Below the pieces are notes generated by a model. It made no database searches. It worked only from the letters and a program-made list of their open reading frames with translations, and had not been told where the DNA came from. This document shows, in pieces, positions 28,306 to 46,545 of a stretch of DNA of 64,000 nucleotides. The stretch covers positions 186,001 to 250,000 of IMG/VR virus record IMGVR_UViG_3300044680_000280; one strand, written 5' to 3'. Position 1 is the stretch's first letter. Every line of letters starts with the position of its first letter. A program made the translations under genes and the position numbers.

Positions 28306-28599
28306 ATGTACGCATACGACCGACGAAATGTCGCAGCGCACCAATTAGGTACGATGGGGGTCAGCCTCGAGCAAATCTCGACGGCAATACGAGAACACCT
28401 AGACATGCCAGGGGAGACGCCTGTAAATGTGTCTTTTGGGGTGGCAGAGGGTCGAGATCGACACCTTGCCGTGTCCTTCACTGCTATGGCTGGCGGAAAG
28501 ACACTCACGGGTCGAGTCGTCTTCGAAATCCTCGAAGCCAACTCCCGCCAGTGGAACGGCTCAGCTATTTTGCTGACTAGCCGCGTTGAAGTCGACTAA
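28306..28599 (+). CDS. hypothetical protein (YxYDRR N-terminus)
   Basis: 97 aa, begins MYAYDRR. Confidence 0.65.
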
Positions 28600-28961
28600 C
28601 GAAGCTTGTGAAAAGCAGCAATTGCCTTGGGATCCAAATCTTCAGGGTCGGGGGCCGAAGGGCCTGTATCCCATTCCTGAGCGGACGCCATGGGAAATGG
28701 ATCCTCTCGACGGATCCAAACTGGATTCGAGACCTTCGCGTCCCTCACCAAAAGCCAGCCGTAAAGATCCAAGAGGAGTAACCTCACGTCCGAGTGCTCT
28801 TCCGACCACCTGACCCCGGACTCATCCATAACCTGGCAAAAAAGGGCTTTGGTCTCATCCGAACGCGAGTATGTCAACTGCCACCCCTTGGGAAGAGCAG
28901 CCAGAATTTGCTGGTGAACCTCCTCCGCACTCCAAAGGGACATTTCTTCAAATGTCGGCAT
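28596..28961 (-). CDS. hypothetical protein
   Basis: 121 aa, GGTGTA 10 nt upstream of ATG. Confidence 0.7.
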   Translation of the reverse strand: MPTFEEMSLWSAEEVHQQILAALPKGWQLTYSRSDETKALFCQVMDESGVRWSEEHSDVRLLLLDLYGWLLVRDAKVSNPVWIRREDPFPMASAQEWDTGPSAPDPEDLDPKAIAAFHKLR

Positions 28962-28970
28962 GAGCTACTT

Positions 28971-29801
28971 CTACACCACTTCGATGTGTTTGACCTTTAC
29001 GTCCGAGGGCTTGAACACGGCAACTTCCGGAACCCCATCAACCAAATCCGAACCATAATACACGACGCAGTCGTACCCCTTGGAACGGGCTCCCTTCGCC
29101 TGGGCCTTGCTGGACGTGACCAAAGTGTTGTGGACCAACACGGAAACGGTATAGACCTTCGGACGATAGGACTTTGAGTCCAATCCAACCTCATCCAGAT
29201 AGTTGTACAAGTAGTCGGGAGCCCCCGTGCTCGTACTAAACAAAGAGAGGCTGGCATCGTCCATACCCAGAGGGGTTATTTTGCTCCCTATGATGTAGCC
29301 AGCAATGTCGTTCAAGGTGTTCGGGTCGACCTTGAGCCAATTCTGGAATCCAACAGAGTCAAATGTACCCTGACCGGGAGGAGGATTGTCGTTGATGAAT
29401 CCAACCTCTTTGGGATAGTTGTTCCAAGCGTCTGTCCCCTCATCGACTAAACGCTGTAAGAACTCGCCGGCACGTGGATTCTTTTTCTTCATATCGGCAA
29501 GGATCATCTCCTTCTCAAAGCCGATGTTACGATTGGCCTCAGCATACTTCACCGCCACACGCTTCGACGGAGTCAGGAAGATACCGTCCCCGTAAAAACG
29601 GTCGACGAGCTCCTTCCGTGACTTGTCAATTTTGAATGTGTGGAAAAGGCGGGTGGTTCCGTGATACAGCGTGACGGAACGATGCTCGAGCAACCCCTGG
29701 AGATTGTACTCCGCCAGGTTGAGCGTTTTCCTCGCAAAACGATAGGCGATCCGCTCTTGAGCGGCGTACCGATGAGCTACTCGCTGGGCGATGGTCGTCA
29801 C
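28971..29801 (-). CDS. ADP-ribosyltransferase-fold protein
   Basis: LYHGT, GDGIFLT..KYA, GYDCV..EVAVF pattern of phage ART-like domains; probable GTG start. Confidence 0.6.
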   Translation of the reverse strand: MTTIAQRVAHRYAAQERIAYRFARKTLNLAEYNLQGLLEHRSVTLYHGTTRLFHTFKIDKSRKELVDRFYGDGIFLTPSKRVAVKYAEANRNIGFEKEMILADMKKKNPRAGEFLQRLVDEGTDAWNNYPKEVGFINDNPPPGQGTFDSVGFQNWLKVDPNTLNDIAGYIIGSKITPLGMDDASLSLFSTSTGAPDYLYNYLDEVGLDSKSYRPKVYTVSVLVHNTLVTSSKAQAKGARSKGYDCVVYYGSDLVDGVPEVAVFKPSDVKVKHIEVV

Positions 29802-29824
29802 CCCCAAGCAGGTTGAAAAGACCT

Positions 29825-30379
29825 TTAGCCGAGACGTGAGCCGTCTGGAACCCCTGGGCACGAAGCGAGGATGACTCGACCGTCCTCCGACTGGGCCGCG
29901 ACAAGCATCCCGTGGGATACTTGACCCATCATCTTACGAGGCGGTAGATTACAAACGGCGATGACCGACATGCCGACAATGTTTTCGACCGTGTAACTCT
30001 TGGCAATACCAGCCAAGATGGTGCGCGACCCCTCCGAGCCGAACGAAACCATGAGCTTTAGGAGCTTGTCACTCTTAGGTAACTCATACGCGCCCGTAAC
30101 CGTCCCCGTACGAAGCTCGACCCGCTGAAAAGTAGCAAAGTCGACGAACCCGTCTTTTAGGTCGGGCTGCTCGTTTTCTTCTTCCTTGTTCTCGTGCACT
30201 GCCCGAAGTCCGCCCGCGAAGCCGTTCACCTGGTCGCAGAACTCCTGTTTTTGCTCCGGAGTTGCACTTGCGAGGAACGCTCGAAAAGCGTCCGCAACGG
30301 GCGTCTTACTGCAAGTGGGAGCCTCCTCGGTGGAAGGAACGGCGCCTGCATTTTGATTGGTTGTGGAGCCCATGTTCAC
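29825..30379 (-). CDS. Trbp111/CsaA/MetRS-C-like tRNA-binding OB-fold protein
   Basis: FQRVELRTG, SDKLLKL, RTILAGI, NLPPRKMMGQVSHGM. Confidence 0.88.
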   Translation of the reverse strand: MNMGSTTNQNAGAVPSTEEAPTCSKTPVADAFRAFLASATPEQKQEFCDQVNGFAGGLRAVHENKEEENEQPDLKDGFVDFATFQRVELRTGTVTGAYELPKSDKLLKLMVSFGSEGSRTILAGIAKSYTVENIVGMSVIAVCNLPPRKMMGQVSHGMLVAAQSEDGRVILASCPGVPDGSRLG

Positions 30380-30990
30380 ACCTCTACGTTTTGAGTGAGC
30401 ATGTTCATGAACATGCGTCCTTGGATGATGGCGTCTTCAACAGCAACGTGGGTCAAATTGGTGCCGATGTCCTTGAGCCATACGGCCGGATACTTTTTTC
30501 GAGCGGCTCCCATGTAAGTCGTTCGAAGCTTGCCCATCCCATACGAGCGAATATCGATTCCGCCTCCGTATCCAAATGGGTCCTCTCCGAGGAGGGTCAT
30601 AAAGTAGTAGTGAGTAAATGCAAAATCGAATGCCACGGGGTACCCAACGAAAATCGGCTCAGTGTCCTCCCCTGGCAACATGTAGTCCACACCCACGTTC
30701 TCGACCCAGTTCCCAAAATCCCGCATGACCCTAAGAGGATCTTCCGGGTTCGTACGGGCTGCCGACCAAGCTTCAGGATTCCTGTCCCAAAAATCGAGCT
30801 TAGTCGCGGGGTCCATCGATGCCCCAGGAAGCTCGCAGAGATTTCTCGAGAATGTGTCGATCATGTTTCCGTTGCCGACACCATCGAGGAGAAAGGCGGC
30901 CGCCCCGAGACTGAGCATCGAGTTCCGACCAGGCAGGGGGCCATCGGTCTCCAAATCTACACTTACGTACACCTCTCGAATCCGGTTCAT
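30376..30990 (-). CDS. DEDDh 3'-5' exonuclease
   Basis: SVDLETDG, AFDF, THVAVEDA. Confidence 0.85.
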   Translation of the reverse strand: MNRIREVYVSVDLETDGPLPGRNSMLSLGAAAFLLDGVGNGNMIDTFSRNLCELPGASMDPATKLDFWDRNPEAWSAARTNPEDPLRVMRDFGNWVENVGVDYMLPGEDTEPIFVGYPVAFDFAFTHYYFMTLLGEDPFGYGGGIDIRSYGMGKLRTTYMGAARKKYPAVWLKDIGTNLTHVAVEDAIIQGRMFMNMLTQNVEV

Positions 30991-45304: not shown

Positions 45305-45811
45305 ATGGCGGACACACTGGGCGATAGACTCAAAGGTTGGGCGGATAAACTCAAAGGTTGGGCGGCGATCATCACCGCCGTCGGAGCGCTCGTCGTCTCC
45401 GTAGAAAAAGCTGTCCAAAAGCCCGAAGAACCAGCCGCAAAAGTCAGCTACTCGGAGCTCTCGAAAGCCGTCGAGCAAACATCAAAAGCGACCGTCCAAA
45501 ATCACGATGACCTCGTCGCCCTCCGCGCCTATCTGAAGGGTAAGCTCGAAGATCTTCGAGACCGCGACGGAGATGGCATTAGGGACGAGCTCGAAGAGGG
45601 CGAGGAACTCCAAAGGGAGGGTCCGAAGGCACCCCTTAAGAAACCCTCCAAACCCCAAACCGTCGGAGGCGGACTGCATTTGGTCGACGCGGGGGCCCCG
45701 TGGGCGCCCCCTACCCCGGCCCCCGCTCCCGCCATGGCGGAACCCCTCCCGCCGATCGGAAATCGGCCAGTTCCCTACAACGCACCACCGGCAGACGCGG
45801 TTTTCAAGTAA
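45305..45811 (+). CDS. membrane-anchored Pro-rich hypothetical protein
   Basis: N-terminal TM, coiled coil, Pro-rich tail. Confidence 0.6.
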   Translation: MADTLGDRLKGWADKLKGWAAIITAVGALVVSVEKAVQKPEEPAAKVSYSELSKAVEQTSKATVQNHDDLVALRAYLKGKLEDLRDRDGDGIRDELEEGEELQREGPKAPLKKPSKPQTVGGGLHLVDAGAPWAPPTPAPAPAMAEPLPPIGNRPVPYNAPPADAVFK

Positions 45812-45813
45812 AC

Positions 45814-45888
45814 TGGAGCCGCCCGCGGGAATCGAACCCGCCTAGACCCGTTTACAAAACGGGGGCATCGCCTTGATGCTAGGACGGC
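45814..45888 (-). tRNA. tRNA-Thr(TGT)
   Basis: Cloverleaf with CCA. Confidence 0.88.
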
Positions 45889-45889
45889 G

Positions 45890-45964
45890 TGGAGCCCACC
45901 GCGGGGCTTGAACCCGCGACCTCTTCCTTACCAAGGAAGTGCTCTACCACTGAGCTAGGTGGGC
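45890..45964 (-). tRNA. tRNA-Thr(GGT)
   Basis: Canonical cloverleaf with CCA. Confidence 0.93.
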
Positions 45965-46206
45965 GTTCGTAACGTTACTGTTTGTGTAGCTCCCGGATTG
46001 GTATGAGCTACAATAAAAGTGTCGAGAAGGCGATGTTTGGCATCGTGCTCTGTATCGTGCTGCTCGCTAGGTACCTACTCACAATGTGAGGGGTCGATGG
46101 ACGATCGGGTTCACTGGGTGCTACGCGGAACTTCGTTCCTGGTCCTTTTACTGCTCTCGGTCATACATCGGTGCTGAAGACATTCTATTTATGACTCTAT
46201 GGTAAC

Positions 46207-46545
46207 ATGTACTTCTACGACAGGCGAGCCAACACAACCGTTACCTACATGAAGCTCAGGTCGGGGGATTGGGGCCTACGAGGGTACAACTTAAAAGAGC
46301 ACTCGACAGTCCAAGTCAAGAAGAAGGACGGGACCTCAAAAACAGAGACGGTTGGAAAGGTCGTCTGGCGAGGTGATGACGGACTGACCTTTGCCGCCAT
46401 CGGTAAGGGTCACAGCCCCAACGAAAGTGGTGGAGGGGGTCACTCTTATGATCGACGTGCTCCGCGCGGAAAGTATGAGTGCGAGGAGTGCGGAGAATAC
46501 GTCACCCCAGGCACACGGTGCTGGGAAACAGGAATGATGCACTGA
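46207..46545 (+). CDS. hypothetical protein (YxYDRR N-terminus, C-terminal Cys cluster)
   Basis: MYFYDRR...; ECEECGE...CWETG. Confidence 0.7.
   Translation: MYFYDRRANTTVTYMKLRSGDWGLRGYNLKEHSTVQVKKKDGTSKTETVGKVVWRGDDGLTFAAIGKGHSPNESGGGGHSYDRRAPRGKYECEECGEYVTPGTRCWETGMMH

Follow-up and report, generated by a model that had tools for sequence, protein, structure and literature searches.

The DNA analysed here (the window; 64,000 nucleotides) comprises bases 186001-250000 of one 406,734-bp phage contig, 55% G+C, held as IMG/VR virus record IMGVR_UViG_3300044680_000280 (hereafter G000), and contains three plus-strand genes whose products share a short peptide, Y-x-Y-D-R-R, directly or almost directly after the initiator methionine. 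P0001 (97 aa; window 28306-28599) begins M-Y-A-Y-D-R-R (tag at nucleotides 28306-28326), P0002 (81 aa; window 40284-40529) begins M-S-Y-S-Y-D-R-R, and P0003 (112 aa; window 46207-46545) begins M-Y-F-Y-D-R-R. The initial annotation of the window had reported the three starts at 28306, 40284 and 46207, together with a second, internal H-S-Y-D-R-R in P0003, and all of them read as claimed. A PHROG search of the gene products recognized a portal, a head maturation protease (phrog_18299) and a major head protein of HK97 type (phrog_2522, E 3e-51), which identify G000 as an uncultured huge phage.

A six-frame scan of all 406,734 bp finds exactly six copies of Y-x-Y-D-R-R (the Y-type tag), each 0-2 codons past an ATG that opens a coding open reading frame (ORF). 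The three carriers outside the window lie on the minus strand and are P0005 (91 aa; genome 45841-46116), P0006 (244 aa; genome 291417-292151) and P0004 (422 aa, with an invariant HExxH; genome 2713-3981). In 20 genomes simulated with a second-order Markov model, Y.YDRR matched 0.25 times on average and never after a methionine, and residue-shuffled proteomes gave 0.018 matches anywhere and 0.0005 at the N-terminus. The hexamer coding score is positive in the tagged frame of 6/6 carrier ORFs, and the remaining frames score negative, save for one weakly positive frame of the 422-aa gene. As the initial annotation had held for the three window genes, the bodies are unrelated and the codons differ: pairwise BLASTP of the six tag-stripped bodies returned nothing better than E 0.8, and the copies are spelled with five Arg codons (CGA, CGC, CGT, AGA and AGG) and with both codons for Tyr and for Asp. 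The upstream DNA is likewise unrelated among the six carriers. Since unrelated bodies share the peptide in differing synonymous codons, selection acts on the peptide itself. The motif is portable from one unrelated protein to another and, as described below, members of orthologous families have swapped it on many occasions. Two further traits first ascribed to the class do not extend to the full set. The carriers are not all small, the additional ones reaching 244 aa and 422 aa, and running against the local gene direction does not characterize the class, because the three minus-strand carriers run along with their neighbours; several other plus-strand genes also lie near P0002 and P0003.

Three types of N-terminal tag and their exchange

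An unbiased search for enriched words in the first 30 residues of all predicted G000 proteins ranked the Y-type motif first and R-V-A-x-R next, the latter with 9 N-terminal copies vs 2 elsewhere in G000 proteins; M-P-S-E, considered as an additional N-terminal motif, was too weak to retain. At least 11 G000 proteins begin M-x(2-6)-[L/A]-R-V-A-x-R-[Y/F] (the R-type tag), several of them with a double copy. They are encoded at genome 22368-26855 (four in a row, at 22-27 kb), 44010-45323, 123000-123644, 137186-138400, 182088-182459, 255962-257782 and 277059-278258, and within the window at 28971-29801 on the minus strand, where a 276-aa ART-PolyVal ADP-ribosyltransferase (ART), one gene from P0001, carries two R-type copies, R-V-A-H-R-Y and R-I-A-Y-R-F. 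This protein matches Pfam PF18760 at 38.5 bits against a gathering cut-off of 31.2 (E 2.4e-9). Other R-type carriers include several proteins with weak zincin-like matches and, on a sub-threshold Pfam match, a J-domain-like protein. When the Y- and R-type tags are aligned by the A-K that trails them, they share a common six-residue core, [R/Y]-x-[A/Y]-[x/D]-R-[Y/F/R], in which the Arg at position 5 is invariant, and hybrid forms (R-V-A-D-R-Y and V-D-R-Y) are also seen.

Two relatives extend the picture: a 323-kb relative (G002) and LR745208.1, a 485-kb uncultured phage that is the sole related record among 50,697 deposited phage genomes and whose capsid protein is 83% identical to that of G000. 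Eight unrelated LR745208.1 proteins share an L-type tag of roughly 28 residues, M-T-T-L-R-S-K-L-I-R-L-A-H ... L-L-P-L-L-K-E-A (among L044-L068, at 14562, 20283, 351543, 351838, 389893, 398171, 433231 and others). The tail of this tag, L-K-E-A, resembles the T4-type L-x-E cleavage context. The same phage also has proteins with V-D-R-Y/F or V-A-F-R-H variants.

Alignments and trees show that the Y-, R- and L-type tags are interchangeable within orthologous families. The zincin-like family, comprising 30 homologues of the 422-aa P0004 (29-61% identity), carries tags in the 10-30 residues ahead of the conserved block, Y-type in at least nine members (duplicated in one), R-type in at least eight, and both in one; a maximum-likelihood tree built from the bodies mixes Y- and R-type members, and well-supported branches force at least four changes. 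In the ART-PolyVal family, 226 homologues were found, many on 230-536 kb contigs, and PF18760 is the precomputed assignment for nearly all of the 120 listed. Its 109 full-length single-domain members comprise 46 with Y-type, 38 with R-type and 6 with L-type tags, the rest being degenerate or truncated, and parsimony counts 34 tag changes on the family tree vs 51 with shuffled labels. Individual proteins can be followed in the same way: a 606-aa R-tagged G000 protein has a G002 homologue that begins with Y-S-Y-D-K-R, a 239-aa R-tagged G000 protein has a Y-tagged homologue on a 437-kb contig, and for the large protein whose gene follows the portal, G000 has the start M-G-D-R-R-A-T-K and the G002 orthologue has V-A-R-R-F-A-T-K. 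P0003 belongs to a family of small phage proteins whose C-terminus is a CxxC zinc-ribbon-like end, with the Y-type tag as an addition; its homologues (46% identity, on ordinary-sized viral contigs of 39-65 kb) have the same body and a start without the tag, and P0003 illustrates the gain of a tag.

The strict form Y.YDRR was found near the start of 53 database proteins, with the first Tyr at residue 2-4 in 39/53, and the consensus among database carriers of the Y-type is M-x-Y-[S/D/T]-Y-D-R-R-[V/A]-A-A-K. A scan of IMG/VR with a DNA pattern encoding M-x-Y-x-Y-D-R-R-[V/A/D/E/G] returned 29 matches, 18 of them genuine ORF starts, all on 111-437 kb contigs; these span a dozen or so distinct proteins, with G000 matches only for the ART, the zincin-like protein and a homologue of the 239-aa R-tagged protein. 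The 11 other matches represent one repeated 28-codon element and three tiny ORFs (about four independent chance matches). The 28-codon ORF, which starts M-V-Y-L-Y-D-R-R, is identical on eight otherwise different IMG/VR contigs of 6-175 kb (L070, L075, L077, L082, L084-L086 and L093) and looks like a shared mobile or conserved element apart from the tag class. The initial annotation had proposed a signal at the peptide level and had looked to further N-terminal copies and to conservation among orthologues as its support. Both were found, and the proposal is strengthened by the varied codons, by retention of the tag across orthologues of 40-69% identity, by its modular swapping and by its occurrence on many other huge-phage contigs. 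The Y-type tag is one variety of a modular N-terminal short linear motif in use across a clade of uncultured phages of 300-500 kb. No description of these tags was found in a full-text literature search that took in the huge-phage survey that deposited LR745208.1 and PMC5512222.

The position of the tag relative to the folded protein was modelled for P0004. In the AlphaFold2 model (24-sequence alignment, mean pLDDT 85), residues 1-8 have a pLDDT <50 and the fold starts at residue 11; the tag is a free tail outside the domain. It is flexible, about 6-12 residues long, and set immediately behind the initiator Met and in front of the folded body. A Tat or Sec signal was ruled out, as there is no hydrophobic h-region or A-x-A site and the residues past R-R are polar or charged in 6/6 carriers. 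A link to the basic and aromatic N-terminal extensions of phage ribosomal protein S21 (PMC7162821) was likewise discarded, there being no S21 gene in the three genomes.

Tag carriers and their genomic context

Overall, the carriers include two ADP-ribosyltransferase families (ART-PolyVal and, as the second, DRAT-like), several zincin-like proteins, a J-domain-like protein, many ORFans and small head-operon genes. None of the six Y-type carriers matches Pfam or PHROG above threshold. In P0004, H259, E260 and H263 are invariant in 24 homologues; Pfam gives only sub-threshold M48/M57 matches, and Foldseek weak matches to M1 aminopeptidase/LTA4 hydrolase (E about 1e-3, TM 0.2). In relatives (L039 and L040; contigs of P0012 and P0013), the Y-tagged zincin-like gene lies beside genes for nicotinamide/nicotinate phosphoribosyltransferase, another phosphoribosyltransferase, a Dam-type methylase, RNase HII and a transglycosylase, and in L039 and L040 an ART-PolyVal gene and an R-tagged gene lie <=10 kb from it.

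The head operon of G000 (genome 165095-176987, minus strand) encodes, in order, the portal, a 1293-aa protein with a D-R-R start, three small proteins, the protease, a Gln-rich scaffold-like protein, a 206-aa protein and the 293-aa capsid protein. These head genes were identified by PHROGs; Pfam searches of G000 for S77, S78 and Gp23 were blank or uninformative. A 123-aa R-tagged gene within this module is conserved in G002, where an R-tagged 125-aa gene directly precedes the protease gene, and in LR745208.1 an L-tagged 134-aa gene lies between the scaffold-like gene and the capsid-proximal genes. Tagged small genes therefore adjoin protease, scaffold and capsid genes in three genomes. The G002 protease gene is fused into a 1425-aa ORF. 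Head genes of T4 are ordered 20-67-68-21-22-23, an arrangement that the G000 head operon parallels. The heptamer TTCTATA occurs 13-60 nt before six G000 gene starts on the minus strand (25233, 123711, 148703, 168183, 257802 and 363396), among them those of three R-tagged genes, the scaffold-like gene and a 949-aa structural-like gene; in G000 as a whole it occurs 13 times on the minus strand and once on the plus strand.

Within the window, P0001 occupies the gap between two minus-strand genes and has a coding score of +20, the five other frames being negative. Neither P0001 nor P0002 has a Pfam or PHROG family or a close relative in IMG/VR, and their label as ORFans rests on these lighter searches (Pfam, PHROG and a close-relative IMG/VR scan). 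For P0001 and P0003, all leads from the ESM Atlas stayed under 0.9. An independent peat DNA run contains an exact contig over P0002. In P0003, the internal H-S-Y-D-R-R (window 46441-46458, plus strand) follows a Gly linker and aligns with a linker that lacks the motif in the homologues; it may be a second tag copy or chance.

Upstream of two of the window genes lies the shared 11-mer noted in the initial annotation, TTTTCTCCTAT, which has only two copies in G000. The first (window 28278-28288), 17 nt from the ATG of P0001, is what the AGGAG ribosome-binding site of a divergent chaperonin-like gene (window 26630-28273, minus strand) reads as in reverse complement, and the second (window 40273-40283) abuts the ATG of P0002 at a distance of 0 nt. 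The shared sequence is real, but a role for it as a shared promoter was ruled out, because the first copy is the Shine-Dalgarno sequence of the opposite gene and the spacings are unequal. No shared promoter was found, and the idea of a co-regulated class, also raised initially, is unsupported. Directly upstream of P0002, window 40186-40262 (minus strand) forms a cloverleaf-like fold that has a 7-bp acceptor stem, both D and T arms and an anticodon arm that is degenerate; it draws no ARAGORN or Rfam call, has a folding z-score of only -0.6, and is possibly a decayed tRNA. There are 37 tRNA genes and a transfer-messenger RNA (tmRNA; tag peptide ANDNGIPDLAIAA) at window 32179-60034, all on the minus strand, and Rfam alone reports a short tRNA match at window 50350-50404, where ARAGORN makes no call.

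The choice of start codon affects whether the tags can be seen at all. The ESM Atlas version of P0001 begins only at Met34, so public gene calls hide its tag, and protein collection entries start early for P0006 (5 extra residues) and for the window ART (29801; 2 extra). These three cases serve as a warning that public gene calls often miss or blur the tag through alternative start codon choice. A word search of 5.8 billion proteins recovered only P0006 itself for that protein. Two partial matches, a 22-codon ORF starting M-Y-D-R-R at about 292260 (minus strand), 110 nt upstream of P0006, and the C-terminal end ..T-Y-D-R-R-N-V of a 1103-aa protein (genome 118633-121944, minus strand), may be chance; the G002 orthologue of the latter has an N-terminal R-type tag. 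Peat metagenomes contain exact copies of G000 DNA. The 406.7-kb record is labelled in IMG/VR as a provirus of 85% completeness. A contig of 463,523 bp carries proteins identical to those of G000, which would fit trimming of the record from a longer phage contig.

A candidate capsid or prohead-core signal and its alternatives

By analogy with the capsid targeting sequence (CTS) of T4, the likeliest role of Y-x-Y-D-R-R is that of a capsid or prohead-core targeting tag, a reading to which we give about an even chance because the carriers that can be named are known or inferred types of head cargo and because of the head-operon context. The tag would let its carrier dock on some part of the prohead under assembly (scaffold, core or inner capsid surface), and the docked host-directed enzymes and small ORFans would end up inside the head and leave it together with the DNA; the enclosed set would include the ADP-ribosyltransferases, the zincin-like peptidases and the J-domain-like protein. 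Three parts of this scheme are inferred: the partner to which the tag docks, encapsidation itself and any later loss of the tag, as by the head maturation protease. There are precedents for such loading. The 10-residue N-terminal CTS of T4 internal proteins suffices to load foreign proteins, and the ADP-ribosyltransferase Alt and the internal proteins (IPII/IPIII) sit in the prohead core (PMC9958956; Mullaney and Black 1996, as cited there). ART-PolyVal and zincin-like domains have been inferred to be packaged in heads and injected (PMC5512222), and 30 residues at the N-terminus of P1 DarB suffice to direct this large anti-restriction effector, and a reporter, into the capsid (PMC9024508). Capsid packaging, which the initial annotation had offered as one example of what the signal might do, is in this light plausible but indirect, suggested by the ART-PolyVal, DRAT-like and zincin-like carriers and by the tagged small genes in the head operon.

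Several observations weigh against a capsid or prohead-core signal. Most carriers lie outside structural modules (e.g., the three window genes among tRNA genes, or the relatives' zincin-like gene by NAD-salvage genes), and TTCTATA, although suggestive in G000, could not be upheld as a late promoter common to tagged and head genes, being absent before G002 starts and rare in LR745208.1. A peat RNA library contains exact contigs over 46142 to about 46517 (P0003) and none over P0002, data that indicate presence only. The ART search reached only LR745208.1 among the 50,697 phage records, with no cultured relative. Complex prediction run on P0002 together with the capsid protein and the head protease is neutral on binding. 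No consistent protease-type cleavage motif follows the Y- and R-type tags, which mostly continue x-A-A-K. Finally, the tag has no sequence similarity to the T4 CTS (by inspection of the consensus M-x-Y-S-Y-D-R-R-V-A-A-K against the IPIII CTS), making it an analogue at most and not a homologue.

A broader version, in which at least three interchangeable tags (Y, R and L) form a code that either defines a large, fast-evolving cargo proteome through a dedicated receptor or addresses a novel phage-built intracellular destination, is conceivable although doubtful. If the first of these is true, the tag code would amount to cargo loading on the scale of a whole phage, with evolutionary dynamics of its own (co-variation of tag and receptor, and swapping of tags between orthologues); in either case the delivered or targeted proteome could be readable from sequence.

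An alternative that we consider unlikely is that the tag is a recognition signal for proteases or chaperones (a ClpXP/ClpAP-type N-degron, or docking to a chaperonin or J-protein) that times the life span or folding of potentially self-harmful effectors in the cell. A flexible N-terminal peptide with basic and aromatic residues would suit such a role, as would the chaperonin-like gene beside P0001, the J-domain-like protein in the genome, the tmRNA of the phage and the many carriers among non-structural genes. However, degrons are usually loosely conserved, whereas here the six-residue core is invariant over orthologues of about 40-70% identity and across dozens of families; moreover, the J-domain-like protein carries the tag itself, and the head operon contains tagged genes.

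It is quite unlikely that the tag directs its carriers to an intracellular site or ligand other than the capsid (nucleic acid, ribosome, membrane or a phage-built compartment). The Asp of the Y-type is unusual for a nucleic-acid-binding arm, despite the Arg and aromatic composition and the invariant Arg that would favor one of these ligands, and although the tandem tags of several proteins suggest avidity for something repetitive, the head-operon context favors assembly. The lack of a hydrophobic stretch past the twin Arg argues against Tat or Sec, and no S21 with such an extension occurs in these genomes.

It is very unlikely that the tag is a substrate or regulatory site for a phage enzyme, whether for ADP-ribosylation of the invariant Arg or as a cleavage or latency peptide for the zincin-like peptidases. 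The existence of three dissimilar, interchangeable tags fits docking better than a chemical target. Such a role would account for the invariant Arg at core position 5 and for carriers that include two ART families and several HExxH proteins, but small ORFans with no enzyme domain are tagged as well, and in the AlphaFold2 model the tag is not docked on the zincin body. Lastly, there is practically no chance that the tag is functionless and reflects coincidence or, as TTTTCTCCTAT upstream of two copies might hint, a repeat at the DNA level whose shared start cassette was carried about by recombination, given six occurrences against 0.25 expected, all past an ATG, with differing synonymous codons and unrelated upstream DNA, and its retention in hundreds of metagenomic proteins.

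Comparison with known systems and significance

Functionally, the nearest known systems to the proposed capsid or prohead-core tag are the T4 CTS and the P1 DarB signal, and in sequence it is unrelated to both. The likeness to T4 is that of a short (about 10 aa) N-terminal peptide common to unrelated, often hypervariable proteins, a description that also fits the six G000 carriers and others; in addition, the T4 core encloses an ADP-ribosyltransferase (Alt), and small core-protein genes lie by the protease and scaffold genes. In contrast, the T4 CTS is of one type with an L/I-x-E cleavage site, whereas the Y- and R-type tags have no such site and three types occur here. Packaging is demonstrated in T4 and proposed here, in a clade with a 293-aa HK97-type capsid protein. 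The P1 Dar proteins have no consensus N-terminal motif, unlike the strict consensus across dozens of families seen here (PMC9024508). Polyvalent proteins contain the same types of effector domains and are inferred to enter the host with the DNA, but their delivery is credited to fusion with head-associated domains in a long polypeptide, whereas the carriers here combine a single domain with a short tag (PMC5512222). Tat signals share the N-terminal position and the Arg pair and differ in having an h-region and an A-x-A site. The cargo-loading peptides of encapsulins are short, conserved, modular and transferable, are usually C-terminal, and dock to the inner face of an HK97-fold shell. The resemblance lies in a short, conserved and modular terminal peptide on diverse cargo enzymes; however, the encapsulin peptides are usually C-terminal with another consensus and their cargo genes lie by the shell gene, whereas here the tag is N-terminal, most carriers are dispersed, and binding to the capsid protein is unsupported.

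Nearly all knowledge of huge phages comes from metagenomes, and functions are lacking for most of their genes. From sequence alone, a strict, portable tag places ADP-ribosyltransferases, peptidases and dozens of unrelated ORFans in one functional class, and the repeated swapping of three tag types offers an unusually clear natural case of short-linear-motif exchange. If the tag is a packaging signal, a peptide of 7-12 residues could possibly serve as a loader of foreign proteins into large capsids, and the tag would list the proteins injected early in infection, which would be prime candidates for roles in host take-over and anti-defence.

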